Shown: positions 27,493-59,370 of the stretch, piece by piece | Layout: every line of letters begins with the position of its first letter | How positions within the stretch are numbered: position 1 is the first letter of the stretch | Source of the DNA: Zootoca vivipara | Lineage: Eukaryota | DNA length: 64,000 nt | Reading direction: 5' to 3' | Assembly: GCF_963506605.1 (NCBI RefSeq) | Contig: NC_083280.1 | Coordinates: forward strand, 8,060,001 to 8,124,000 | Made by a program: the position numbers and the translations under genes | Notes under the pieces: model-generated | Told to the model about the DNA's origin: nothing | The model's database searches: none | Seen by the model: the letters and a program-made list of their open reading frames with translations, nothing else

Positions 27493-27734
27493 ACAGGTAG
27501 GTAGCCGTGTTGGTCTGAGTCGAAGCAAAATAAAAAAATTCCTTCAGTAGCACCTTAAAGACCAACTAAGTTTATATTTTGGTATGAGCTTTCGTGTGCA
27601 TGCACACTTCTTCAGATACACGTGTATCTGAAGAAGTGTGCATGTATCTGTGCGTGTGCGTGTGCATGTATCTGTGTGTGTATCTGAAGAAGTGTGCATG
27701 CACACGAAAGCTCATACCAAAATATAAACTTAGT
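27493..27734. mobile_element. Penelope-like element ends in inverted arrangement with minimal hammerhead motifs; other copies near 31112, 34190, 42880, 2850
   Basis: 57-bp perfect inverted arms (27565-27621 and 27678-27734) containing CTGAAGA-stem-GAAAGCTC. Confidence 0.8.
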
Positions 27735-31600: not shown

Positions 31601-34278
31601 TGGCTTGTTCCATCTCCCTGCTTTCTGTTTTCCTTTTCCAACAAACACACACCATTCTGTGACCAATGAGCATGTGTGCTACTACTCATTGGGCTGTTTA
31701 GGAGTGGCTGTTTTTTAATTTATCAAAGATGTTTGCAAACGTTGCCATGCTAGTAAGCTCCTCTTGCTTTTTTGTTGACCTGTATTGTTGACACTCACTG
31801 TCTCGGTTTGCTATTAGAAGGAAGCGATGGCAAGCTGGGAAAGCTCATATCCTGAGCCTGTAAGGTGACAGGGATGGGCGGGAAAAGAAGTCCATCCATT
31901 TTCCTGACACAGGTTCCCTATCCCTGAGAAAACGGGTGTGTGTGCCCATACCTTCTTGCAGCACTACAGGTGAGCAAGCATCTTTGTTCACCTTTTCATG
32001 AAAGGCGGAGGACATCTTGCAGATCTACTGGAACAAAAAACTGACCTATGTTTGTGTGTATACATGCAACATACAATGAATTAATGTCTGTTTGCTAAGT
32101 GGAATACATCAGCATTACTTAGAAGCATGCAATACAATGCCAGCGTAATGTATTTACCTCGGTCAAACCACAGCTGGAATACTGTGTCCAATTCTGGGCA
32201 CCACAATTTGTTGACAAGATGGACACCACAAATTCTGGGCACCACAATTTGTTGACAAGATGGAACGTGTGCAGAGGAGGGCAACCAAGGTGATCAAGGG
32301 TCTGGAACCCAAGCCTTATGAGGAACGGTTGCATCCATGACAGATGGCCATCCAGTCTCTGCTTAAAAACCTCCAAGGAAGGAGACTCCATCACCTTCTC
32401 AGGGACTCCATTCCACTGTCGAACAGCTCTTAGCACCAGGAAGTTCTTCTTGATGTTGAATCGGAATCTCCTTTCTTGTAACTTAGAATCATAGAATCAT
32501 AGAATCATAGAGTTGGAAGAGACCACAAGGGCCATCCAGTCCAACCCCCTGCCAAGCAGGAAACACCATCAAAGCATTCCTGACAGATGGCTGTCAAGCC
32601 TCTGCTTAAAGACCTCCAAAGAAGGAGACTCCACCACACTCCTTGGCAGCAAATTCCACTGCCGAACAGCTCTTACTGTCAGGAACTTCTTCCTAATGTT
32701 TAGGTGGAATTTTCTTTCTTGTAGTTTGAATCCGTTGCTCCGTGTCCGCTTCTCTGGAGCAGCAGAAAACAACCTTTCTCCCTCCTCTATATGACATCCT
32801 TTTATATATTTGAACATGGTTATCTAAAAACCATTGATTCATGTCCTACCCTCTGGAGCAGGAGAAAACAAGCTTGTTCCCTTGAGAATTTGAAGACGGC
32901 TATCATATCTCCTCTCAGTCTCCTCTTTTCCAGGCTAAACATACCCAATTCCTTCAACTGTTCCTCATAAGGCTTGGTTTCCAGACCCTTGACCATCTTA
33001 ATGAATGCCTCTTAAAACTTTTATTTTGCTGGCCTATTATAATACGGAGTTGACACTTGTAACCAAACATTGCCAAGACTCACATCTTAGCTTGTAACAC
33101 TTGGGATCCACTCTGGCTCATGGGAGACCCTGTGCTGCTTGGCCACAAGGTCCTTGCTTGGATTGTCTCAAGTCATGGTTATGAAAACATTGCCTTGCAC
33201 AAAACCAATGGCTGCCAAAGACCCCAGGTAGAAATTTAGCATGACAGTAAGTCAATAGATCAGCATACGAAGGGAATTTGGTTTTGTGGGTCACCATATG
33301 AAAAAGCTAGGAACTGCTGAGAAAGCATATGCAGGAACAAAGGAAGCTGAATTATATAATTGTCTATCCAGCTCAGTACTGTCTACACTGACAGGCAGCC
33401 ACTCTTCAGGGTTTCAGGCACCTACCAGTACCACTAGCTACAACACAATAGAATCAGACACACAGCATTGGAGAAAACCAAGAGACAATTGCATCTCTTC
33501 TGGGAAGCCACTGGATGATGTTTATGGACCCTCAATCTCTCAATGTCCCCCCCCCTCCCTGTGGCCTCTCTGCAAGCCCATCTGTTTGCTTGGCGGAAAG
33601 ATTAGTCTCCCAGGCTCTCTCTTTTGTTTGCCCCAGTTTGTCCAGCTGTAATTGTGGGCTTTTATAGGGGCTTCAAAAGGCCTCCCCTCCCCAACCCTCT
33701 CCTCCGCACAACCCCCCTGTAGCCCGCTAACAGGATGGCTTTAATGCCAGGATGAGAACCCAGCGGCATCCTTGCAGGGAAGGAGGAAACTTCTGGGGTA
33801 ATTCTGAGCCGGGCCTGAGTGTGGATCCAGGGCCCGAGGACAGCTTTGCACATTGTTAAACACACACACACAATTTTAAAAAATCCTTCCAGTAGCACAT
33901 TAAAAAAGGTAAAAGTATCCCTGACCGCTAGGTCCAGTCGCGGACGACTCTGGGGTTGCACGCTCATCTCGCTCTACATATAGGCCAAGGGAGCCCCGGC
34001 GTTTGTCCACAGACAGCTTCCAGGTCATGTGGCCAGCATGACAAAGCTGCTTCTGGCGAAACCAGAGCCTTCCCGGCGGAGCGGTACCTATTTATCTACT
34101 TGCTCTGGCGTGCTTTCGAACTGCTAGGTTGGCAGGAGCTGGGACAGAGCAATGGGAGCTCACTCCGTCACAGGGATTCCGATCGGCAAGCCCTTAGAGA
34201 CCAACTAAGTTTGTTATTGGTATGAGCTTTCGTGTGCATACACACTTCTTCAGATACACAGACACAGACACAGACACA

Positions 34279-40099: not shown

Positions 40100-42295
40100 G
40101 TAAGCATGGAGGTAGCTCTCTAGCAGGGTGGCTCCTGAGAGGCAGCAGGAGGAGAGAGGGGTTTGTTTGCTTGGCTTGTCAAACAGGCACTTGCTATGGA
40201 ACAGGGCAGGCCTCTGACGGGAAGCACAGTTTGCGCTGCGGACTGTGTGCCACAGGCAGGCCGAGCTAGAGGACAAGAAATTCCGCAGGGAAATCCGAAT
40301 ACGCAGGCCATGCCAGAGGCCGGATGGAAAGCCTCTAGGGGTGGTAGCTCAGTGGCAGAGCATCTGCTTGGCATGCAGAAGGTTGCAGGTGCCTGGCATC
40401 TACAGATAGGGCTGAGAATGTCCCCTGCCTGGGGTGACCAACTGCAAATATTGCATTGCACTGCACTGCACTGCACTTATATCCCACCTTTTCCCCCAAG
40501 GAGCACAAGGTAGTGCACATGGTCCTCCCCCTCCTCATTTAAGGACAGAGGAATGAAATAACTCCTTCACCCAGCACAGTTAACATAAGGACCTCACTTC
40601 CCCTGTGGCAGGATGGCCACCATCCTACATGGCTTCCAAAATAGGATTAGACTAATTTATCGAAGCTACCAACATGAGTCTGACCAAACTGCGGGAGGCA
40701 GTGCAAGACAGGAGTGCCTGGAGTGCTCTGGTCCATGGGGTCACAAAGAGTCGGACACGACTAAACGACTAAACAACAACAGCAACAATTTATGAAGGAG
40801 GAGGCTGTTGACGACTACAGTCGTACCTTGGTTTTTCAACTTCCGAAAATGTTGGAAAACCAAGGCACGGCTTCTGATTGGCTGCAGGAGCTTTCTGCAG
40901 TCCATCGGAAGCCACGGAAGCAGCGTCAGACGTTCGGGTTCCAAAGAACGTTTGCAAACCAGAACAATCCCTTCTGGGTTTGCGGCATTCGGGAGACAAA
41001 ACATTCGAGTCGCAAGGCGTTCAACAACCAAGGTACGATTGTACTAGCCAAGATGACTGTGCTGTGCTTTGCCTCCACTGTCGAAGGCAGCGATGCTTCT
41101 GAATACCAGTTGCTGGAGAAACCGCAGGAACAGAGAGTTGGGTTTCACACTGGCCTCTGGCTGGCCACTGTGAGAACAGGATGCTGGATCAGATAAGCCA
41201 TTGGCCGGATCCAGCAGGATCTTCTTATGTTCTTAAAAATGTGGTCAAAAGGTCTAGCGCGTCAACGCAGCCTATGGCTGTTGGGTATCCAAAGCTGTTC
41301 AGAGCTCCAGGAGAATTGTACTTCTCCCTGTGAAAGTCATCCTATCTGTGTCCATTTGATAGCTCAGTCGGGAGAGAGCATGAGATGGGAACCGTAACCT
41401 CAGGGTCGTGCGTTTGAGCCCCACATTAGGCAAAAGATTCCTGCATGGCAGAGGGTTGGACTAGATGACAGTTGGGATCCCTTCCAAATTTATGATTCTA
41501 TGATTGGTGACCCACCCTGAGACCTCATGGTGCAAGGAGATGATGCTGCTGATGATACAAGACTGGGCCGACTCAGTGTAAGGCAGCTTTCTGGGTTGCT
41601 ACGATGCTCCTTTCTCTCTCTTTTTGCTAGGTTTTTTGGAACAGATGCATCCAGACCAGAGGAAACTTGACGGACGCCAGGCTCTTCATCACGAGGCCGT
41701 GGGAGCCCAGCTCCAGGTTTCGTGGTGCTCGCTAGAACCCCCCAATTTCACCAACTGAGGCGAACAGGCGCACCAGGACTGTGCATCTGGCCCCAAACCG
41801 CGAGGAATGGCCATGGTAGAGAATGAGCCTCTTAAACTCAGAGCCGTGGGTTCGAGCCCCACACTGGGCACAAGATCCCTGCACTGCAGGGGGTTGGACT
41901 GGATGACCCTCGGGGGTTCCTTCTGACTCTACAATTCTGTGAAACTCTCGCCCCAGGGAGCGAGCTAGCCAGCCAGCCTTAGCGGCCTTGTCATTCCTTG
42001 CCTCCTCCGTCAGCCAAGGAGGAAATGTCTGGAAGTGGGAAGTCTTCCTGAAGGCTCGGGCTTGCTGCTCGGAAGCCGTTGACCAGAGGTCACCAGCAGC
42101 TGCACAACAGGAAGCCGCGCGGTGCTGGCTCAGAGGTGCCGGCAGCTACGCAGAAAGCCCGTCGGAGCCCCCTTGGCTTGCCCTCGTGGCTGTGGCATCG
42201 TTCAAGACACCGTCCATGGAAGCCAGGCAGGAGCTGGGAGGCAGCCGCTGTTCCCTGGCAGGAAGATGCTGTGACAAGGCGGATGCCAGCTGGGC

Positions 42296-42308: not shown

Positions 42309-43869
42309 GTGAGTGCTGGGCTCGCCCCAAGGGATCTCAGAAGACACAGGCAGGTCTCCTGGGGAGACCGGCCTGTGGGTCAGCCACACACCCTTCTCTG
42401 CTGGGAGCCCTCCTTCTCCCCAGTCCTAGATGGCTGGAGGGAAAGGCACTCTGTGCATGGGCTGGAGCGAGGAGTCTGACTCCGGCAGACCTGGCTGAGT
42501 CTCAGGGGCTGTGGATGGTGTTGCCTCCAGTCCAGAGCATCCTGAGAAGGAGCAGGGGTTGATCTAGGTGGCCCTCAGGGCCCCTTCCAACTCTACCATT
42601 CTCTCCAGGACTTCCTATCCACTATGGATTTCCCCAAGGACAAGTCTTGCTGTTACACACAGCAGCGCCTCTCTAAAAAGCAGGGTGGTGCTCCCCCCCC
42701 CAGAAATGTTGCTTACGGGTAATTGTATGCAGATGCATGCTCATTGGACTAGTTCCTTCATTGACAAATGGTCATGTGGGTCATTGAATAACAGTACAAT
42801 CCCCTGCATGCCAAAATCAGTCCTGCTGAATTTGGTGGGGCTTACTCATGAGTGGGTACAAGATTGCAAAATAAATAATAAAAATTCCTTCCAGTAGCAC
42901 CTTAGAGACCAACTACTAAGTTTGTCATTGGTATGAGCTTTCGTGTGCATGCACACTTCTGCAGATGCAAGACAAGATTGCAGCGTGAGATTTAGTTCAT
43001 TGGGTGACGTCTTTTAATTAGCAGAGGAAAGAACTTGGATCCTGTTTTGTTTTCATGAAGCCCAGTTCAGGCCAGCGGTGAAAATTCTGGAGAAGTAACG
43101 AAACTGAAATTGCTATTTCCAGCATTCGGGTGGGTGGAGAGTGCTGTGCCTAAAACCTTCACCCTCTCCCTCTAGGTGATCCTTCCCTCCACCTCAATTA
43201 TCAGGTCTGGTTAAGGTTTCTCTGTGTTGAAGGCCAGGCTCTCTGCACATGCTCAGAGGCCCCTTTGCAGCCTCACATGTTCAGCTGCTAAGCCTTGGCA
43301 TGTGCACAACACACCATTCCAGAATACAGCAAATATTAATACAATACTGGAAGGTGTTTGAACAGGAAGGAGAAGGCACCCACCCCTTTGTAACTGAAAT
43401 GCACATTGAACCAATAATGTCTGAAATCCAGTTTCACCATCATCCTGGTCCTCTATTCATACGCAGAACATTTTCTTTCTGGGTCAAAGGAGGTGTGTGT
43501 GCACATACAATCTCTGTGTGTAGGAAGGAGAGGTACTTGTTATGTCCTTGTCATCTGCCTGATAGCTCCGCTTTGGAGGGGCAAATTTAACCGGGGAATT
43601 GGATTGGGAAGGGAATTGTGGAGTCTGTGGACAGATCCTTTGCCTGCAAACTCACCCAAATTCAGCCTCTCATTACCCGGGGCTGAGGGTTTCCTTGTCC
43701 CACCTAATTTTATCATCATCATTCATCACACTTATTTCTCAGCTTTTCCTCCATGGCTCTCAATACGTGGTTTCCTGTCCTCCTGATTTAATCCCAACAA
43801 CCCTGTGAAATAGATTGACCTGAGAGGAAAGCCCAATGTTAAATGAGGAGGGGGAGAACCTCTTTGAGG

Positions 43870-43946
43870 AGGAAGGAAGGAAGGAAGGAAGGAAGGAAGG
43901 AAGGAAGGAAGGAAGGAAGGAAGGAAGGAAGGAAGGAAGGAAGGAA
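43870..43946. repeat. (GGAA)n microsatellite
   Basis: Pure repeat about 75 nt upstream of the TBCB retrocopy. Confidence 0.98.
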
Positions 43947-44061
43947 GTCTAGGGAGCCCACCTGCCAAGCTGATTCAGAGCATACCAAACATTTGGCCAT
44001 CTTGTCCACAAATTATGCAGTCGAGTGCTTCTGTCCGAGGGGGACGGGCAGCCGGTTCGGG

Positions 44062-44802
44062 ATGAGCGTCGTGACGGGGACCCCCGCGGTGGTGTCCGTA
44101 TCCATCAGCAGCACCCTCAACTCCTTCCGGGCCCTCAAGAGATACGCCCGGGGGCTCACCCTCGCCGAGTTCAAGTGTAAGCTGGAACTGGTTGTGGGAA
44201 GTCCGGCATCATGCATGGACCTTGAGCTCTATACTCCAGATGACAAGTTTGTGATGAAACTCGACAGCGACGAGGCCTTGCTGGGGTCTTACCCCATCGA
44301 CGACGGGTGCAGGATTCATGTTATTGACACGAGTGGTGCAACCATCGGGGAATATGAAAATGTGTCAAACGTGGAGAAATTCGAGATAACCGATGATGAA
44401 TATGACAAGCGAAGAGATACAGCACGCTCCTTCATGAAAACAAGTAAGCTGGGGCACTACAATGCGGAAGAAATGATGAAGAAGGAAGCAGAGAGGGAGC
44501 AGAAGCTGGTGGAGGAGAAGGCCCTGGCGGAAGCCATTTCCGTGGGGTCAAGGTGTGAGGTGCGGGCAGCAGGGCAGCCCAACAAACGAGGGACAGTGAT
44601 GTACGTTGGCTTAACGGAGTTCAAGCCTGGTTACTGGGTCGGCATCAAGTATGATGAGCCTGTGGGGAAGCACGACGGAAGCGTCAACGGAAAGCAGTAC
44701 TTTGAGTGCCAGCTCAAGTACGGCGCCTTCGTGAAGCCTCGCTTCGTCACCGTGGGGGATTTCCCGGAAGTGGTGGACTATGGCCTGGATGACGAAATGT
44801 GA
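44062..44802 (+). CDS. TBCB: Intronless tubulin-folding cofactor B retrocopy (246 aa, intact ORF) inside a THPO intron
   Basis: Ubiquitin-like domain ([22 protein letters not shown]), coiled coil and CAP-Gly ([27 protein letters not shown]) in one uninterrupted ORF; short GC-rich 5'UTR from about 44020; 3'UTR ends in ATTAAA (45385-45390) at an assembly gap. Confidence 0.95.
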
Positions 44803-45552: not shown

Positions 45553-45680
45553 GGCTCCTTCTCCTCACTGTATTCGTGCTCCATATGGACCTGTTCGAGA
45601 TGAGTCCCACCAGACTGGTTTGTGACAGGCGGCTAATCCAGAAGTACATCACCGAAGCCATGGACTTGGAGGAGAAAGTG
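45553..45680 (+). CDS. THPO: Thrombopoietin coding exon 2
   Basis: cttag|(R)LLLLTVFVLHMDLFEMSPTRLVCDRRLIQKYITEAMDLEEKV|gtaagc; 128 nt; EPO/TPO helix A with first Cys. Confidence 0.95.
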
Positions 45681-46831: not shown

Positions 46832-46918
46832 AGCCAGTGCGGGGAACTCCCCTTTCTCCAGCAGCCTGTGCAGCTGCCCCTGGTTGGGTTCAGCCTCCGA
46901 GAGTGGATGGCAAAGACA
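46832..46918 (+). CDS. THPO: Thrombopoietin coding exon 3
   Basis: ccgcag|SQCGELPFLQQPVQLPLVGFSLREWMAKT|gtgagt; 87 nt; SQC and LP.V.FSL.EW motif. Confidence 0.96.
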
Positions 46919-48239: not shown

Positions 48240-48709
48240 TTATTTATACCCCACCCATCTGGCTGGGTTTCCCCAGCCACTCTGGGCAGCTCCCAACAGA
48301 ATATTAAAAACAAGATAAAACATCAAACATTAAAAACTTCCCTAAACAGGGCTGCCTTCAGAAGTCTTCCAAAAGTCAGAAAGTTGTTTATTTCTTTGAC
48401 ATCTGACGGGAGGGTGTTCCACATGGCGTGGGCCACTACCGAGAAGGCCCTCTGCCTGGTTCCCTGCAACCTCACTTCTTGCAGTGAGGGAGCCGCCAGA
48501 AGCGCTGGACCTCAGTGTCTGTGCTGAATGATGGGGGGGGCGATGCTCCTTGAGGTATATTGGGCCACGGGCAGGGAGAAGTCTGGACACCACCTTCAGA
48601 TCTATGGAGCAAAGCTGAGATACGACCACAACAACCAACCAACCGATAAATAAATAAATAAGAAATGTCAGAATCACCCAACGACTGCCCCTCTCTCTTA
48701 CTCTTTCAG

Positions 48710-48874
48710 AACCAAGACAAAGGGCAAGAAACCCTCCGTGATCTGGCTAACTTGGTGGATGGCACAGCAGCTGCCCAAAACCAGCTGAGCCAGGGCTGCG
48801 CCTTGCCACTACTCCAGCAGCTTTATGAGAAAGCCAGCTCCTTCCTCCTGCAGCTCCGAAACTTTGGGTGGCAG
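48710..48874 (+). CDS. THPO: Thrombopoietin coding exon 4
   Basis: tttcag|NQDKGQETLRDLANLVDGTAAAQNQLSQGCALPLLQQLYEKASSFLLQLRNFGWQ|gtgaga; 165 nt. Confidence 0.93.
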
Positions 48875-48998
48875 GTGAGAGGCCAAAGGGGGCTTCCCCA
48901 GGATGATGATGACGGTGGTGTATTAAATTTGTGTACTGCCTTTCATCCGTAGACCTCACAGCGGTTCACAACATAAAATACAAAATAAAAACACAAAA

Positions 48999-49870
48999 TC
49001 TCTCTATATAAAAATGTAAAAGGTCCATGTTTGTGTTTCATGACCTATCTCCAAAACCGCTTGACTGATTGAGTTGCCATTTGGACACAATGTTCCTGTC
49101 CAATATGCGAGTGTTTCCATAAACTTAGATTACGCAGATGTGACACCTGTCACAGGTAAAAACATGAATTTGTGTGTGGGGGGGGGAAATAGCTCCCTCC
49201 AGTGGACGGCAAAGGAACAGATGCCATTTCTGTACTGCTGCCACACCCCACCCACCCTCTGGCTCCCCTCCGACCTCACCACCCCTGCCCCCTACTCCTC
49301 CTCCTCCTACCTCACCAGGCCGCTCCAGAGCCAGACCGGGCCCACAAGTCCCCTCCCTCGACTCTGGGCACGGCGGGAGAGGTAGGCCCGCTCCCATCGC
49401 CACTCTCTCTGGAATCAGGCCTGGCCCCGATCTCGCGTCTGTCGCCCCGACACCTCCTGCAGAGCCAGGCCAGGCCCCAACCTCACGTCCACCTTCCCAG
49501 ATGCCACCTCCACGTTCAGGCCGGACCCACAAGTCACCTCCGCCGACTCCGCCGACGGCAGGAGGGACAGGCCCGGTCCCGCCAGCAGACCAGACCATGC
49601 CCCAAAACCACCTCCACCATGAGGAAAACGGGAGACTCTCCCCCACATTACCTACAGGTACCCCCTTACCCACCGGGGGACCCACACAGAGCCTCCCCAA
49701 ACTACGAATACTTCATATGGGGGGGGGAAACCAGACAGGGCTTGGGGGGGGGTCACGTCCTCCCTGTGTCCTGGGAAACGGGACCCCTGACCTGCCAAGG
49801 TGGTCCATTCCACTGTGGAAGAACACTTATCGGCAGAAATTTCTTGCTAATGTGTAACACGGCTACCTAC
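48999..49870 (+). mobile_element. Possible non-autonomous Helitron in the last THPO intron
   Basis: A^TCTCTCTATATAAAAATG 5' end and GC-rich interior; 3' CTAG end degenerate. Confidence 0.45.
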
Positions 49871-50532
49871 CTGTAGCCAACACTTGTGCTCGGAAATATA
49901 CTTGGAGCCAGTGAAGATCCTTCAGGACCAGTGTTATAAGGTCCCGCCTTTCATTCCCAGTCACCAGTCTAGCTGCCACATTCTGGCTTAGTTGTAGTTT
50001 CAGAATCACCTTCAAAGGTGGCCCCACGTAGAGCGCATTGCAGTAGTCCAAGCAGGATACAGTGGTACCTCTACTTACGAACTTAATGCATTCCTAACGC
50101 ACATTTGTAAGTCGAAAAAATTTGTAAGTCGAATCCCATAGGAATGCATTGAGAGAGAAAAATTGTAAGTAGAAGCAACCCTATCTAAAAATTCGTAAGT
50201 AGAAAAAATCCTATCTAAACAGCATCCAAGATGGCGGACGGAGCTCCATTTGTAAGTAGAAACATTTGTAAGTAGAGTTATTCGTAAGTAGAGGTACCAC
50301 TGTATATCCAGAGCATGTACCACTCTGGCGAGAAAGTTTGCAACTGTTCCTCATAAGGCATGATTTCCAAGACCTTTTATCATCCTGCATTCAAGATTTA
50401 TTCATTTCAGAAATTTTATGCTTGTTTTTTTAAAAAAACATTCAAAGCAGTTTACCAAAAATAATGTTTTTTCACTGTGGCCCCTTAGCCCTGACAGGCA
50501 CCCACACACTTGTTTTCCTTTTCTCATTCTAG

Positions 50533-50751
50533 GAACAGAACCCAACTGCACAGCCCGAGAGCAGCTCCCAGTTAATTCCTGAAAGAAACCTTAGGACAAT
50601 CTTTGAGACCTACAAACAGCTTGTGCGGGGAAAGCTGCGCTTCCTCTTCCATGACTTGTGGAAAGACTCCTGCAGTGCGGAAGATCAACAGAGGGCTGCC
50701 AACCCTGCAGTCCTGCAACCTCCCAGTCGGAACACCTCGAGGGGCAACTGA
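50533..50751 (+). CDS. THPO: Thrombopoietin last coding exon
   Basis: ttctag|EQNPTAQ...RTIFETYKQLVRGKLRFLFHDLWKDSC...NTSRGN*; L.RGK.RFL helix D motif; total CDS 612 nt = 203 aa + stop. Confidence 0.93.
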   Translation, partial: EQNPTAQPESSSQLIPERNLRTIFETYKQLVRGKLRFLFHDLWKDSCSAEDQQRAANPAVLQPPSRNTSRGN

Positions 50752-52325
50752 AAGACCCCCCCATGGGCCTGATCCTTCAAGGGAGAGAAGCACAGCACAA
50801 GTAGTAGGCCCTCTGGTGGCCAGGTGTGGAAGAGCAAGCCTAGCCAAGCCCTCAAACCACAGGGGTCAGGAAAAAAAACCACACACCCAAGGAAGGAGGA
50901 GACCCTCATCGTGAAGGCTTGCTCTAGCTGCCTGCAGAAAAGTGTTTCCAGAGCTGAGCGAGCCCAGCTAGGTTACTGGAAAGAACCGGCTGCCAGCCAC
51001 GATGGCGACATCCTACTGTTGGAGGCAGCACACCCGTCTTTCAGCTGCAGGGCATCACCGGGGGAGAGTGTGTGGCTGCACTCAGGTCCTGCTTGCAAGC
51101 TTCCCAGAGGCACTGGACTGGACTGGGAAGTGTCCCGATTTTCCAGGGACAGTCCTGAAAAGACAGAAGCTGTCCCAGTTTCTGATTTGATCCCGGAATG
51201 TCCCACTTTCTCTTTGGACACCCCTGGTTTCATCAGAGAAATGTTGGAGGAGATGGAATAGGATTCCCTATTTTCACTGGGAAAATGTCAGAGGACACCC
51301 CTCTTTTCACTGAAGAAATGTTGGGAGGGATAGAATAGGATGTCCCTGTTTTCATTGGAGAAATGTTGGGAGGATATGCTGTAATGAATGGATACTGGAC
51401 TTACAGTCTCAAGGCAGCAGCCAAGCTCCTCACATGATCTTATACTCTTGGAGCCATTCATCGCCTTGCTTGGGAAAGGGACTGAGATTTTAGGAGCTCC
51501 GCCCCGCCCCGCCCCGTACTCTGTGCAAAGCCATTGGGGCAAGTGGGCATTACTCAACATCTTGAGAGAAAGGACAGCAGCTCTTTCCTCTCTAAGAGAC
51601 CATGATGGGCGCTTGGACTTCCTCAGTATCAGGGCTTCCAGCTGCAGGAGGCACAGTGAATAGAAAACACTTAGAATTCCTCTCCAGGCCTTCCCCCATC
51701 TGGGGTGGAGTGTGCCAGGGACATTGGAGGCAGGTCTGACCACAAGCCTCCACATTATTCCTATACGGCTTTGAACACGGTCCACCGGAGAAATTGAACC
51801 AAGATGGGTGCCCCCACCTCCTGCAATTCCACACACAGAAGCTGACACAGGTCTCTTACTTTGATCCTGGAGATGGGATCCTATCCTGTCCTGTGCCGGT
51901 TAATGGCCTAGTTAAATGGATGTGAGGCCAGCTGTGAATATGTCACTGCTGTTGCTTCCAGTGACCTCAGTCTGCCCAACGGTAGGGCCAGGTCCAGTTA
52001 GAAGTAACCCCTGAATACAACCAGAGTATTTGGTTAAAGTGGGGGCAGCCTCTGGCACATTTAAAAGTTGTCACCCAACTTCTGTTCTCCTCCTGACACC
52101 AATAGCCAGGGTGCACGGCGTGGGCAGCTGTGGAACAAGAACAGCTGGCTTCGGTCAGCAGGAGACACCTGAGCAAAAGGGGAACACCTCTTGCATCTGC
52201 CTATGGTTGTGGGATCCTCCCTTCCACCTATGAGTGGCAGCAGGAGACTGATTAGTTTGAATACTAATAAGACCTGGTTTATACCACCAGTGAATGCACT
52301 AAACATAACTGAAAGCAGGAGAAAC

Positions 52326-52382
52326 TACTGAAGAAGCCCGTCATATGGGCGAAACAGGCGAAAAACGCCGGCAGCCTGTCTA
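52326..52382 (+). ncRNA. Type I hammerhead ribozyme core, probably from a Penelope-like element or retrozyme
   Basis: CTGAAGA 52328-34; stem II GCCCG/TGGGC; GAAA 52351-54; stem III CAGGC/GCCTG; GTC triplet 52378-80; proximal stem I only 2 bp. Confidence 0.75.
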
Positions 52383-52786
52383 CCATTGACACTTCGTTCG
52401 ACCTGCTGCCACTTTGCTGACCGCTAGCTATATAGCCTCAAAGATCATAAAGACTGGTTTGCCTTTCGGTATTTATTTGTACATGCTATCAGCTTGACGT
52501 TAGGTTTTGGCTTCTGTGTCAGCACTTGTATATGGTTCTCTTATTGTTTTCTTTTTGGATTAATAATACTTGATTGAAACCTGATTGAATCTTGTGCCCT
52601 TGCGTGCTGCTTGTTTTGTATTGGACTTTTGAAGAAATTGGCAGCATTAGCCCATTATCTTTGTTTTTGTTGTACCCACTCAGAAGGAGGCAGGGTATGG
52701 TGCCTTAAGAGACTGGATCAGAACCGGCCTTTCCTGAGACTCTGTGCTGGAAGAGCACAAAGGCTTTCTACACAAAACCTTAGAAC

Positions 52787-52792
52787 AATAAA
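52787..52792 (+). terminator. First canonical poly(A) signal after the THPO stop
   Basis: AATAAA followed by U-rich and GU-rich sequence; I saw no AATAAA or ATTAAA between 50751 and here. Confidence 0.5.
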
Positions 52793-53937
52793 GACACATG
52801 CTTTTTTTTAAAGAAAAAAACCATAACACCCCAGAATGTGCTCTGTTGTATCTTACCAGCCACATGGGGATAGGTGAGCAAAATACAGGGTACGAAGAGG
52901 TGACTGTTCCTTGCACGCAGTGGGTGCATCATAGAAAAATCCCAGAAAGCTACAAAACACATGTTGATTGAAGTAGTAGTAGTAGTTTGGATTTGATATC
53001 CTGCTTTATCACTATCCTAAGGAGTCTCAAAGCGGCCAACAATCTCCTTTTCCCTTCCTCCCCCACAAAAAACACTCTGTGATGTGAGTGAGGCTGAGAG
53101 ACTTCAGAGAGAAGTGTGACTAGCTCAAGGTCACCCAGCAGCTGCATGTGGAGGAGCGGGGAAGCGAACCCGGTTCACCAGATTATGAGTCCACCGCTCT
53201 TAACCACTACACCACGCTGCCACTCGCAGCCCATGGTTTGGTTGTTTTGGCACAGTAGGCCGGGCTTCTGCAGATGTTTTGGACTACAACTCCCATCCGA
53301 TGGGAACTGTAGCCCAAAGCAGCCGGAGAGGCACAAGGCTGCGGAAAGCTCTTCCAAAGTGAGGTTTTTTGAATGAATGCTTTTGTTAGGCTCATTATCA
53401 GGGAGGGCAGCATCATGTGTGCAAGCATATGGCCTGGGCACAAAACTGGTTAAGAACCACTTAAAAATTCAGCCGTAAGGATCCCTTGAAGTGAAAAACA
53501 ACCCCAGGGTAAAGTGCAAGGAGGGCTCTGCACGTACAATAATAAAAAAAAAAGGATTGAGTCAGTGTTTCCAAGGACTGTGGCTGAACGAGAGATACTG
53601 GGCAATCGGTTAACAGAGGCTGGTTGGCTAGAGGGTGAAACGGCCAATATGACATACAGTATATTTTGCCTACATACTGTGTCCCCTGATGGAAAGCTCT
53701 CATGCATTCTTGCATTGCTGAATAAAGTATGAATTTTGTGTACTCGAACCCCCAAGGGAAATCTATTATATCAGAAAAGCCAGAGTCCTGGTCCTAGTCC
53801 AGAATCTTGTCATTCCCCTTTTCCTTTCTGACATTATCAGGCCGGCTTTCTCTTCATCTGTCTTGCTCTCTGTCCTTCTGCCCAGGAAGGCCATGTCTCC
53901 TTTGCTATTTGAGATGAAACTTGGCCAGGATTGCAGT

Positions 53938-53975
<38 letters not shown>

Positions 53976-54684
53976 AGAGTCCAGATCCTGAACATTAGGA
54001 ATATATGACAAATCAGAAAGTCTCCAAAAGCAAGCAGATAAGTGAATTCAATCTGCAGAATATGGATTTCTGACTGCAGTCTTGCAAGCTTGTTGTTCTC
54101 AAATGCTTGGGCAGCGAACTTTCTAGCGTATATACAACAGCCAAATATATCTATATATATATATAAAAGCTACGTTTAATTAAGGTAAGAAACTGAGGTC
54201 AAACAGAGGCTCCCTCCTTTTCCCCAGGCCCCCAGCTAAGACAGCCGTCCCCAACCCAGCTTAGGATGGCAATGCTGATTCTCACAGAACTGTGGTCCTT
54301 ACCACAATCACCTGTGTAATAAAAATGGCAGTTTATCACAGGCACAGAGAAAATCCGGAGCACAAAATGTAGCCCTTTCAACCTCCCAGTTGTAGAGGAT
54401 GTTCTCAGTCGGCCTGGTACTCTGCCTGCTGCCACCAAGGGGACATTTGGGATACATTTTCACACTGCAGTCCTGGCGGAATCCGAAGAAAGATGATCTT
54501 CCTTGAGGCTGTTGATGCAGAGGCTTGGCTGGGGGGATGTGAGGAGGAAGAGGAGAAGAGGAGCTGGGGAGAGATGCTTCTTTTAACAGGCCAGCAAGAT
54601 TCCCTCCATGTACTCGGAGGGCAGCAAATGCCCACGCTGCCCCACACTGAGTCCACGCTGCTGCCATGACAGCTCCCAAGGTGG

Positions 54685-54870
<186 letters not shown>

Positions 54871-55362
54871 TTAAAACAACCCCAGCAGGGTCACGCAACT
54901 GCAGGTGCACCATACTATGGAACTCACTCCCACATCCTGCCCCAAGTTCTGCTGGACGCCCTTCTCAGCCCTCACTTTCTATGGCTGGTGCTCAATGGGT
55001 CTGGTGGGGTGGAAGGCAGGGAGCTCAACAGCAGGTGGCGCCAGAGGCAATGACAGGACAAGCCATTGCCTGCCTGGCTGTAAGTTAGATGCCAGGAAGG
55101 TGGGGCTGGCTGAGGGCATATTACTGGTGGGGCTGTGCTCTATTTGCTCTAAAGGACAGACCTCCAACAGCCTCGGAAAGACTTCTTACCGTCTTCCTAT
55201 TCACTCCCCACTGCTCCCAATCCAGTCGCTTAGGTCCTTTCCTATTGAGCATCACAAAGAGCTACACTCCGCGCTCAGAGAGCTTGTGAGAAGGTTATTA
55301 CTGGTATGTACCTATTCGTTTCCGGCCAGCCCTTTTCGCAAATAGGGGGGGGGGGACACTTA

Positions 55363-55503
<141 letters not shown>

Positions 55504-56954
55504 TCACATCACTTCAAGAGGTAACAACATGCTAATAAAGATCTGCGTATCTGTTTCAGCTGCATCACAAGTTTTAAATAGTGCAGATTACAGAGCCTGC
55601 AGATTTCCTCTTTCTAAATCCACTTGCAGCCTGGGGAACAGTAAGTTCAGGTGCCTTCACCAGGTGTCCTGCATGTCATACCAGAAATGGGCAAACTCCG
55701 ACCCTCCCAAGTTTTGTTGGACCTCAACTCCCATCAGCCTCAGCCAGCATAGTCAATGGCCAGAGATGATGGGCATTGTAGGCCAAACACAAGTGAAGGA
55801 CCACAGGTACTCCATCCTTGGGCTGTATGGCATAGCGGCCAGAGTGCTGGACTAAATCTAAGGAAACTTGGCTTCACATCCGCCTTCCAACAGGGGTGGC
55901 CTTGGCAGAATGTCTCTTTCTCTGCCTCGGCCACCTCACAGGGTTGTTGTGGGGATCCGTGTGTGTGCAGAGAACAGAGAACCATACACGCCACTTTGAA
56001 TTCCTTGGAGGAAAGGCAGGATATAAATGTAAAATACATAGAGGGTAACAAAATATTGTGCAGCAAGTTGGCAGGAAACAAAAGCACCCCTTTTATTGCT
56101 CTTTCCTCTCTGGCCCAGGAGGACTCAAGAGGAGCAAGAAGAACTTAAGAGGGATCTCATGAGAGGCATGGCTTAAGGAGTGCAAGGCAGACAGACACCC
56201 TGTGCATGAGGAGCAAACTGCAGAGGATGAAAATAGGGGTGGAAAACCTAACTCAGCTCAAGGGCTTGCACTTCATACTGTGCAACCTATCAGGGGCCAG
56301 AGACAAAAGTGGGCGGAGCAAAATCTCTCTCAATCCTCCATCCAGACAGGCAAAGGGGAGACATTCCATCAAGGCAAAAGTAGTGGTGCAAAGCAGAGCC
56401 AGAGAGGGGTGCAGCCAGGAGAGAGCTCCAAGAATCAGACAGAGAGACCTGGGTGGTCACATTTAGCCCCTGGGCTTCAGGTCCCCGACCCTTGGAGGCA
56501 GTAGAACCATTGTGTTTACATTTCAAATGTGAACACACTGTGGGTCTCTAAGACAGTTGGATGGGGCTGTGTATGCCTTCTTCCAACAACTCCTGCAGCC
56601 AAGCTGTTGCCAAACATATTGCACTGCTTTCCTTTGGACCACATCAGCGAGGCCAAGATAGGGGTCATGTCGCCTGGGCAGCCCAGGACCTCCAGACACA
56701 CTGCTCATGCTTGCGCCCTGGAGAGGTCACTTTGGTGCTGCTAACACAGCGGTTTGACTTCACCCCAGGAGGCAAACTTCATTGTCTCTCGAGCCAGACA
56801 GATACCATCTAGTGTAGGTTTTGAAGGTACTACAAAAAGAAGCTAGTTTTCAACCTTGCAGAAAGCTGAAAGGAAGGGCACACAACCACGGGACTGATTT
56901 GTGAAGTCCTCTCCTTGGCTAGTCCTCCGTTTGCCATCCTCTGGCCCCCCATTA

Positions 56955-57116
<162 letters not shown>

Positions 57117-57465
57117 TCATGTCGCAATGCCTTTGTCTAGCTTCATACATCACAGATTCGGCAGCTGAATTTCCAGGAAAAAACCAGCATGTGTTTCAAG
57201 AGATATGGGGACATTCAAACAACAAGCGAGGGGAAATCTTTGCATGGGGCAAGTGTGCAATAGGAATGCGTAAGTGTGATGAGTGTTTGGTCTGTGTTTA
57301 TGAGTATGGGATGGCTGTGCCTGCTTTTGCTATGGACACATCCACTGCTGGCATGTAATGTTGGGGTGGGTGGGAGTACAGGGGAAATGATCCATGGGCT
57401 AAAAAAGTTTTTAACTAGCTCTGGGTCAGAGAAACACGGCCAGGCAAGGCCCCTGATGGCACTCA

Positions 57466-57657
<192 letters not shown>

Positions 57658-58792
57658 TCAGTTTTGTGGAGCCAGGGAGAAGGATGAAGAGTTGCACATT
57701 TAAATACAAAATATCTGTTGAAACCCTGGCTCAGAGATCAAAGAGAAAGGGACCTAAAACTGTAAAGTTTTTGAGCCAAGATCTGAAGGGATTTTGAAAT
57801 GGAGGGTCACCAAAGTGAGCAGTGATTTGAACCTGGGTCTCTCAATTTGTAATCAGAAGCTCTCACCACAACACCAGGGCCGCATTCTCTCTTGTTGCCA
57901 TGGTTATTAGCATCTGAATTGTTAAGAGATCCTTCCCCATCACTCTTGCTTCATAAATTCAAGCCCTACTAAGCCAAGTAGACTTAGTAAACTTAGGCAT
58001 TGCAGTAGTAATAGTAGAAATAGCACTATTACTACTGCTAATAACAGTAATCATCACCACTATAGACATACTCTTGCACTGCAGCACACTGGCAACCTTT
58101 GTTTATTTATTTAATGAAGGCAGATATAAAATTAGTGGCTCGACTCAAACTGTTAAAGTGTTGGACTAGTATGTAGGTGCACTGGATTTCAAATGCCTTA
58201 TATACATATACGAAATGGTTTTTATTTCCAAACTGCTTTGAGATTGTATTTAATGTATGATGTATCTACAAAGCACCTTTTCTAGGTGTCTCAGGGAGTT
58301 TTGCAAACCGTTAAAACAGTTTTTAAAAACCAATTCCAAAATCCCCTGAAGAGAAGTTTGACCCTAAGGCGGAGAGGGACTTCTGCGCCCATTCAACTGA
58401 AATAAATAAATAAATAAATAAATAGGATGCTGTTGGGGGAGGAGATTCAGATTTGAATTCCCTGTCAACCATAAAGCTCAGAGGCGCTATCACAACCCGC
58501 CTCACACGGTAGTTTGCAAGGGTAAAATGGGAGGGGGGGAACTGGGGGTGAGGGGAAGGGAGAGAAAGAAACCAAGTACTGTACACTCCACCTCAAGAGC
58601 CTTGGAGGGGAAAACGAAAGGGTACACTGCACATGCACATGCAAACGCAGGAAGTCCGCAACTTAGGCACATTTAACTTGTGTCTGTTCAGCTGTACCCA
58701 AGGCAATTTTTTTTTAAGGGGGCAATCCTATCCGCCATTGCACCCATTGGGTTTCGGCTATAAATGCCCTTGGCTTTGGGTGCGATCCATCA

Positions 58793-59370
<578 letters not shown>

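Follow-up and report, generated by a model that had tools for sequence, protein, structure and literature searches.

The hammerhead ribozymes of Penelope-like elements (PLEs) are described as structures in which a bulged nucleotide lies 5' of a long helix II and helix I is short; they contain no helix III, act as dimers and show low activity (PMC4209133). A helix I of only 2 bp has a precedent in the Penelope hammerheads of Drosophila virilis (Cervera & de la Pena 2014, PMC4209133), and the PLE hammerhead of Anolis cleaves only together with its protein (PMC11167929). In canonical metazoan type I hammerheads (RF00163), such as those of Schistosoma Sm-alpha, newt satellite 2 and the amniote intronic HH9 and HH10, helix I measures about 6 bp and helix II about 4 bp, conserved loop-loop contacts are present and helix III has 1-2 bp. 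Metazoan type I hammerheads occur commonly in small tandem retrozymes (PMC7229834). The Clec2 genes of rodents and platypus carry a type III hammerhead in their 3'UTR for which cleavage has been demonstrated, and in which the core-adjacent helix I is fully paired and contains an insertion of 150-1500 nt (Martick et al. 2008; PMC6155905). Pseudoknot-type tertiary contacts are also known in hammerheads in which a distant segment is base-paired to a loop in the helix II region; the 6-bp pseudoknot replaces helix II while helix I is kept (PMC11300833).

A hammerhead-like motif was found about 1.6 kb 3' of the stop codon of the thrombopoietin gene THPO in the window (the whole stretch of 64,000 nucleotides that was analysed). 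The reading that we prefer, to which we assign a probability of roughly 55%, is that the motif is a retroelement-type hammerhead relic carried on a small low-copy repeat, that it is inactive or nearly so, and that it lies by accident in the probable 3'UTR of THPO.

Sequence anatomy and gene context

All 53 bases from 52328 to 52380 on the plus strand belong to the motif, which contains every conserved hammerhead letter and two of the three helices (Table 1). The order of the elements on this strand is CUGAAGA, A, GCCCGU-CAU-AUGGGC, GAAA, CAGGC-(14 nt)-GCCUG and UC. In the standard numbering, the invariant positions C3-A9, G12-A14, A15.1-U16.1 and C17 are all kept, and the motif agrees throughout with the invariant core pattern (C3 U4 G5 A6 N7 G8 A9, G12 A13 A14, A15.1-U16.1, H17). 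Helix II is closed by the G10.1-C11.1 pair (G52336-C52350) and the bulged A52335 that precedes it is a documented natural variant (PMC4209133). Helix III, in which 52354-59 pair with 52374-79, opens with A15.1-U16.1 (A52354-U52379) and also has the common C15.2-G16.2 pair; its loop contains the palindrome GCCGGC and a hairpin that competes with it, GGCG-AAAAA-CGCC. Helix I consists of U1.1-A2.1 and A1.2-U2.2 only, which are followed by an internal loop of 6 x 19 nt. As this helix lacks a run of several contiguous pairs next to the core, the candidate was filed as hammerhead-derived and not as a bona fide hammerhead ribozyme.

Most of this anatomy had been described in the first-pass annotation, and the letters were confirmed. 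The core CTGAAGA, the extra A, helix II (read there as GCCCG/tcata/TGGGC), GAAA, the CAGGC/GCCTG helix with its GUC triplet and the 2-bp proximal helix I (TA/TA) are all in place, with helix III reaching 6 bp once A15.1-U16.1 is counted and C17 falling on 52380. The complementarity between GTCA (52340-43) and TGAC (52387-90), the perfect 12-mer inverted repeat and the AGCAGG segment are likewise present as described.

Table 1. Coordinates of the motif and of the features around it.
Feature	Position	Strand	Basis or remark
Last THPO coding exon, stop codon 50749-51	50531..50751	+	tblastn with squamate thrombopoietins
Left arm of perfect 12-nt inverted repeat (13 bp with a G.U)	52233..52244	+	closes 181-nt domain
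UAGUUU, exact Watson-Crick complement of AAACUA (52322-27) adjoining C3	52253..52258	+	
Helix I 5' strand, UA	52326..52327	+	pairs with UA 52381-82
Core C3-A9, CUGAAGA, N7 = A	52328..52334	+	sequence and descriptor
Unpaired A between A9 and G10.1, in the style of Penelope-type minimal hammerheads	52335	+	sequence; PMC4209133
Helix II hairpin GCCCGU/CAU/AUGGGC, 6 bp including one G.U, 3-nt loop	52336..52350	+	descriptor, folding
GAAA = G12, A13, A14, A15.1	52351..52354	+	sequence
Helix III hairpin ACAGGC/14-nt loop/GCCUGU, 6 bp	52354..52379	+	sequence, folding
C17; predicted scissile bond on its 3' side	52380	+	inferred from motif
Helix I 3' strand, UA	52381..52382	+	2-bp helix I
Right arm of 12-nt inverted repeat; contains CCUGCU, alternative partner of AGCAGG 52314-19	52402..52413	+	
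Sole canonical poly(A) signal after the THPO stop	52787..52792	+	AATAAA/ATTAAA scan of 49800-53000
POLR2H (RPB8) gene, tail to tail with THPO	~54690..59050	-	

The remaining THPO exons were located at 45567-45680, 46832-46918 and 48710-c.48877 by tblastn carried out exon by exon. The lacertid THPO proteins identified were those of Podarcis muralis and Lacerta agilis; identity per exon was 87-97%, and the C-terminus equals that of the Podarcis muralis protein (204 aa), which marks the host as a lacertid-type lizard. The THPO stop at 50751 given in the first-pass annotation was verified, and 52787 proved to be the only AATAAA or ATTAAA on the plus strand in 49800-53000, the poly(A) signals upstream of the motif being weak variants. 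Since the stop codon and the sole canonical signal bracket the motif, a position inside a THPO 3'UTR of about 2 kb is plausible if the signal at 52787 is used. The candidate sits in the spacer of about 3.9 kb between the stop codons of THPO and POLR2H.

Chance expectation and likeness to Penelope-type hammerheads

The candidate site was the only match of the descriptor in the window, and no match was found in 200 dinucleotide shuffles of the window. Chance expectations were estimated in factorised form on 40 Mb of Markov sequence. Under loose criteria (helix II and helix III of at least 4 bp, helix I of at least 2 bp, any pairs), about 0.006 matches are expected per window and more than 100 per genome. 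As many windows had been screened with loose rules, such numbers would suit a likeness that arose by chance in intergenic or 3'UTR DNA free of constraint, and this explanation is also consistent with the missing helix I, the missing Rfam match and a z-score of only -1.3 for the local fold. However, the candidate has consensus features for which the loose rules did not ask, namely G10.1-C11.1, C15.2-G16.2, C17 and helices of 6 bp. When the strict consensus (G10.1-C11.1, CGAAAC and GUC, with no helix I required) was applied with helices of at least 4 bp, 1.7 matches were expected per 1.5 Gb and 0.02 per 277 windows. When both helices are required to reach the observed 6 bp, the expectation is 0.03 per genome (1.5 Gb) and 4e-4 per 277 windows, and on this count the motif probably descends from a real hammerhead. 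The N7 = A and the bulged A that the candidate has in common with the Penelope hammerheads residing in the same window argue further against coincidence, which we regard as very improbable. Neither the 4-bp GTCA/TGAC 'pseudoknot' nor the 12-mer inverted repeat is significant alone; by an arithmetic estimate, about 0.8 inverted 12-mers within 200 nt are expected per window.

Three Penelope-type minimal hammerheads were encountered in the window while the descriptor was being checked, at 27615 (minus strand), 27684 (plus) and 34253 (minus). These copies read CUGAAGA-A-GUGUG-CAUG-CACAC-GAAA-GC-UC/AUACCA, where the cut precedes AUACCA and helix I is formed by GUAU/AUAC, and they agree in their features with what has been published on PLE hammerheads (PMC4209133). 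Two of them lie head to head in a palindromic insertion at 27578-27721 (cores at 27615 on the minus and 27684 on the plus strand), for which Rfam gives no hammerhead match; the long inverted repeat instead causes spurious miRNA-family matches (mir-5014, 73.6 bits, below its gathering score). The third copy (34215-34260, minus strand) adjoins the 3' end of a long (TG)n / (TCTGTG)n run and is followed by AACTTAGTTGGTCTCTAAGG, a tail that is common to the copies at 27.6 kb.

The candidate resembles PLE minimal hammerheads in its type I order of elements and in its CUGAAGA core with an unpaired nucleotide (A52335) before a long helix II of 6 bp. It also has a short helix I, for which 2 bp are reported in the D. 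virilis variant, and UACCA follows its cut site where the resident copies have AUACCA. On the other hand, its helix III has 6 bp and a 14-nt loop, whereas in PLE hammerheads, which act as dimers, helix III is either absent or a tiny palindrome (AGCU in the resident copies); its helix I has 2 bp as compared to 4 bp in the resident copies, and no PLE terminal repeat or ORF was found nearby. With the canonical metazoan type I hammerheads it shares the element order, the invariant core and CGAAAC...GUC but not the proportions of the helices.

An Rfam search, which the first-pass annotation had proposed as a check, returned no match to the hammerhead models (RF00163, RF00008, RF02275-77) when cmscan was run on three nested stretches of 4 kb, 251 nt and 99 nt with a cut-off of E<=10, and no hammerhead match was found at the gathering threshold in the whole window. 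The resident PLE minimal hammerheads, which served as a control, were missed by the same models, and a negative covariance-model search therefore carries little weight for Penelope-type hammerheads of this genome. A scan of viral contigs with the pattern of the core and helix II gave no matches. The same pattern matched once in metagenome contigs, in a contig labelled human gut metagenome; 161 of its bases were inspected, which are GC-rich and coding-like and contain neither helix III nor GUC, and it was taken as a bacterial chance match.

The retroelement origin suggested in the first-pass annotation is plausible, as the style of the core is that of the resident Penelope-type hammerheads and the depth of reads and contigs (see below) suggests a multi-copy family. 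We infer that 52328-52380 on the plus strand would be a derivative in the style of Penelope-like elements, in which the core is complete, the bulged A is present and helices II and III are intact at 6 bp each, whereas a usable helix I is missing. Its carrier is probably a low-copy repeat of about 180-200 nt that is closed by the 12-nt inverted repeat and was inserted in the THPO-POLR2H spacer. Several observations count against a relic. Outside the core, the candidate has no homology to the resident PLE hammerhead elements. A Pfam search of ten ORFs around the candidate found no remnants of a reverse transcriptase, an endonuclease or a GIY-YIG domain; short or old non-autonomous copies would be expected to show neither such homology nor such remnants. 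In addition, neutral decay should not spare 15 core letters and 12 helix pairs and yet lose helix I; a perfect core without helix I therefore points to a source family with an unusual helix I or to a young copy that was truncated or permuted.

Transcripts, folding and activity

RNA evidence was drawn from three stranded runs of the species (X12-X14) and one contig set over 48600-54599, with strandedness calibrated on the POLR2H 3'UTR (36.4 vs 0.08). The THPO exons have zero depth in all three runs. The few reads on 52200-52399 have the same orientation as POLR2H, i.e., antisense to the motif, and they therefore come from minus-strand RNA; no sense-strand reads cover the motif. At 52380 the depth is at most 5 reads, and at this low depth none was seen to begin or end there. 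All reads over the motif differ from the window: C is replaced by A at 52350 (C11.1), C by T at 52359, where a G.U pair is retained, and AGA is inserted inside AGCAGG. Even in the POLR2H 3'UTR, the individuals of the RNA runs show about 2% divergence from the reference, and part of the variation in the motif may therefore be allelic. Allelic or not, with C11.1 changed to A the closest related reads do not keep the closing pair of helix II, and this speaks against constraint.

The reads stay within the 52200-52400 bin, without spreading to the bins on either side. In the contig set, the word depths of the short contigs that cover 52283-52422 add up to 23-95 at the positions tabulated, as compared to 2-6 in the neighbouring single-copy DNA. 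These read and contig depths, from which the copy family is deduced, suggest that the motif sits on a small multi-copy unit. Within the window, a blastn search with 52000-52700 found no second copy.

The 196-nt stretch has a strong fold (z = -4.4) because of the outer 13-bp stem, whereas the 91-nt core region alone is unremarkable. In the minimum-energy structure, GUCA/UGAC, AUGG/CCAU and GAAGAAG/CUUC.UUC pairings replace helix II. The ensemble pairing probability is about 1 for the outer 12-nt inverted-repeat stem, 0.78 for helix III, 0.21 for helix II and 0 for the 2-bp helix I. A structure with helices II and III together lies 2.3 kcal/mol above the minimum, and forcing all three helices including the 2-bp helix I raises this to 9.4 kcal/mol. 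The two competing closures of the domain proposed in the first-pass annotation are both possible as pairings in the sequence, but the AGCAGG/CCUGCU closure has a probability of 0, being beaten by the outer 12-mer stem.

The motif had been put forward as an active cis-cleaving hammerhead that removes the poly(A) tail of the THPO mRNA and lowers THPO output in the manner of Clec2. Such a ribozyme would have a discontinuous helix I, made up of the 2 bp and a distal closure by AGCAGG/CCUGCU or by the 12-mer, together with a GUCA/UGAC loop II pseudoknot. What stands of this proposal is the complete core with helices II and III, which is unlikely to have arisen by chance, and a helix III that is stable enough for a monomer. 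The motif is sense to THPO and, with 52787 as the only canonical poly(A) signal, would be contained in the 3'UTR. The fold of helices II and III is also near to the minimum and could form first during transcription, and precedents exist both for pseudoknot contacts (PMC11300833) and for a 3'UTR hammerhead (PMC6155905). What is not supported is the activity. All known forms, including the pseudoknot and Clec2 hammerheads, keep a real core-adjacent helix I, whereas here it has 2 bp and a pairing probability of 0, the hammerhead fold is less stable than the minimum by 2.3-9.4 kcal/mol and no covariance model matches. Furthermore, GUCA overlaps the top of helix II and joins the competing hairpin, the distal closure through AGCAGG loses to the outer 12-mer, C11.1 is changed to A in related reads, the reads over the motif are from the minus strand only and THPO has zero depth in the runs. 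An active ribozyme in the THPO 3'UTR is thus distinctly improbable, and the claims that the THPO mRNA spans the motif and that cleavage there limits THPO output are unsupported.

Like the Clec2 hammerhead, the candidate lies on the sense strand of a (probable) 3'UTR upstream of a poly(A) signal, and one helix has distal parts that are far apart. Unlike in Clec2, the pairs that are missing here are the core-adjacent ones. The pairing proposed for GUCA/UGAC is similar to that of the pseudoknot hammerheads in linking a loop of the helix II region to a distant segment, but it comprises 4 bp that compete with helix II, and there is no helix I. A hammerhead that was co-opted from a retroelement and that tunes THPO mRNA stability in lacertids by means of a discontinuous helix I, a distal stem and a loop II pseudoknot is in our judgement extremely improbable. 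Were the motif active, it would be the second natural hammerhead acting in the 3'UTR of a vertebrate mRNA, independent of Clec2 and in the gene of a dose-sensitive cytokine, and it would mean that an interrupted helix I, a new architecture of this helix, is tolerated by the core. As found, it is one more retroelement-type hammerhead motif in a genome that abounds in them, and motifs with an intact core but without helix I do not warrant the label of ribozyme ahead of a cleavage test.

A different source of helix I was considered, namely a retrozyme-like RNA, circular or in tandem, with the junction GUC/UAGUUU; the motif would be one half of its split hammerhead, and the solo genomic copy would be permuted or rearranged and hence unable to cleave. 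Speculatively, UAGUUU would pair with AAACUA to form a helix I of 6 bp and a canonical three-helix type I hammerhead. TAGTTT occurs 14 times in the 64 kb and about 0.03 occurrences are expected within 130 nt, although the search for a partner was post hoc. The three-helix fold with the GUC/UAGUUU junction lies 3 kcal/mol above the minimum. The unit size of about 130-180 nt and the possible helix I at a circular junction recall the metazoan retrozymes, small repeats in tandem whose circular RNAs carry type I hammerheads (PMC7229834); the candidate differs from them in having no tandem arrangement and another type of helix III. Neither a tandem second unit nor a target-site duplication was found at 52253/52380. 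The related contigs continue across 52380 to about 52422, and the repeat unit therefore does not end at the cleavage site. An internal tandem duplication of 18 nt (52230-47 / 52305-22) was rejected as not significant, since 127 of 500 shuffles scored equally well. Taken together, we consider a split hammerhead rather unlikely.

Under the preferred reading of an accidental relic, the RNA would fold mainly as the outer 13-bp stem with the alternative inner hairpin. With this outer-stem fold favoured in the genomic context, the monomer would be expected to be catalytically dead or very weak; by analogy with the 2-bp helix I of D. virilis, weak activity may be retained. The motif would then be an accident of insertion and not a regulator of THPO.

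Neighbouring sequences

Several other sequences in and around THPO were recorded. A GC- and Pro-rich stretch at 49174-49876 (plus strand), in which two frames stay open over about 225 codons, lies in the last THPO intron. Its ORFs were rejected as THPO coding sequence, as squamate THPO is only about 170-205 aa and has no long C-terminal domain of the mammalian type. Another THPO intron contains an intronless TBCB-like ORF of 319 aa at 43843-44802 (plus strand), with an N-terminal extension of KEGR repeats; its TBCB part shares 96% identity with the TBCB of Podarcis muralis, and among Pfam families the ORF has Ubiquitin_2-like and CAP-Gly relatives. This retrogene was discarded as a marker of the orthologous locus, the matches being parent TBCB genes at other loci.

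Within the probable THPO 3'UTR, 51000-51400 is either a low-copy repeat or an indel-polymorphic stretch, where reads and one contig join 51203/51209 to 51336 with 4-10 letters replaced; the reads here are mostly plus-strand RNA. Two interspersed repeats of very high copy number occupy 49800-50400 and 52800-53400; their contig word depth is about 10,000, and the RNA reads that fit them in part number in the hundreds. In the second of them, a tRNA-like head on the minus strand (53149-53221, 17 bits) is accompanied by a palindromic hairpin (53272-53324) with a weak likeness to mir-5408 (31 bits, below gathering), and the T-rich end of this repeat adjoins the AATAAA at 52787.

The 3'UTR of POLR2H (54228-54599, minus-strand RNA) is well covered in X13 and almost absent in X12 and X14. 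The X13 reads differ from the window at 54418 and 54433 and by a G insertion after 54565, and the likely poly(A) signal of the gene is an ATTAAA on the minus strand at 54175. Finally, the only Rfam match in the window at gathering score was a tRNA-like sequence at 40338-40404 (plus strand; 29.9 bits against a cut-off of 29 bits), which is possibly the head of a SINE.
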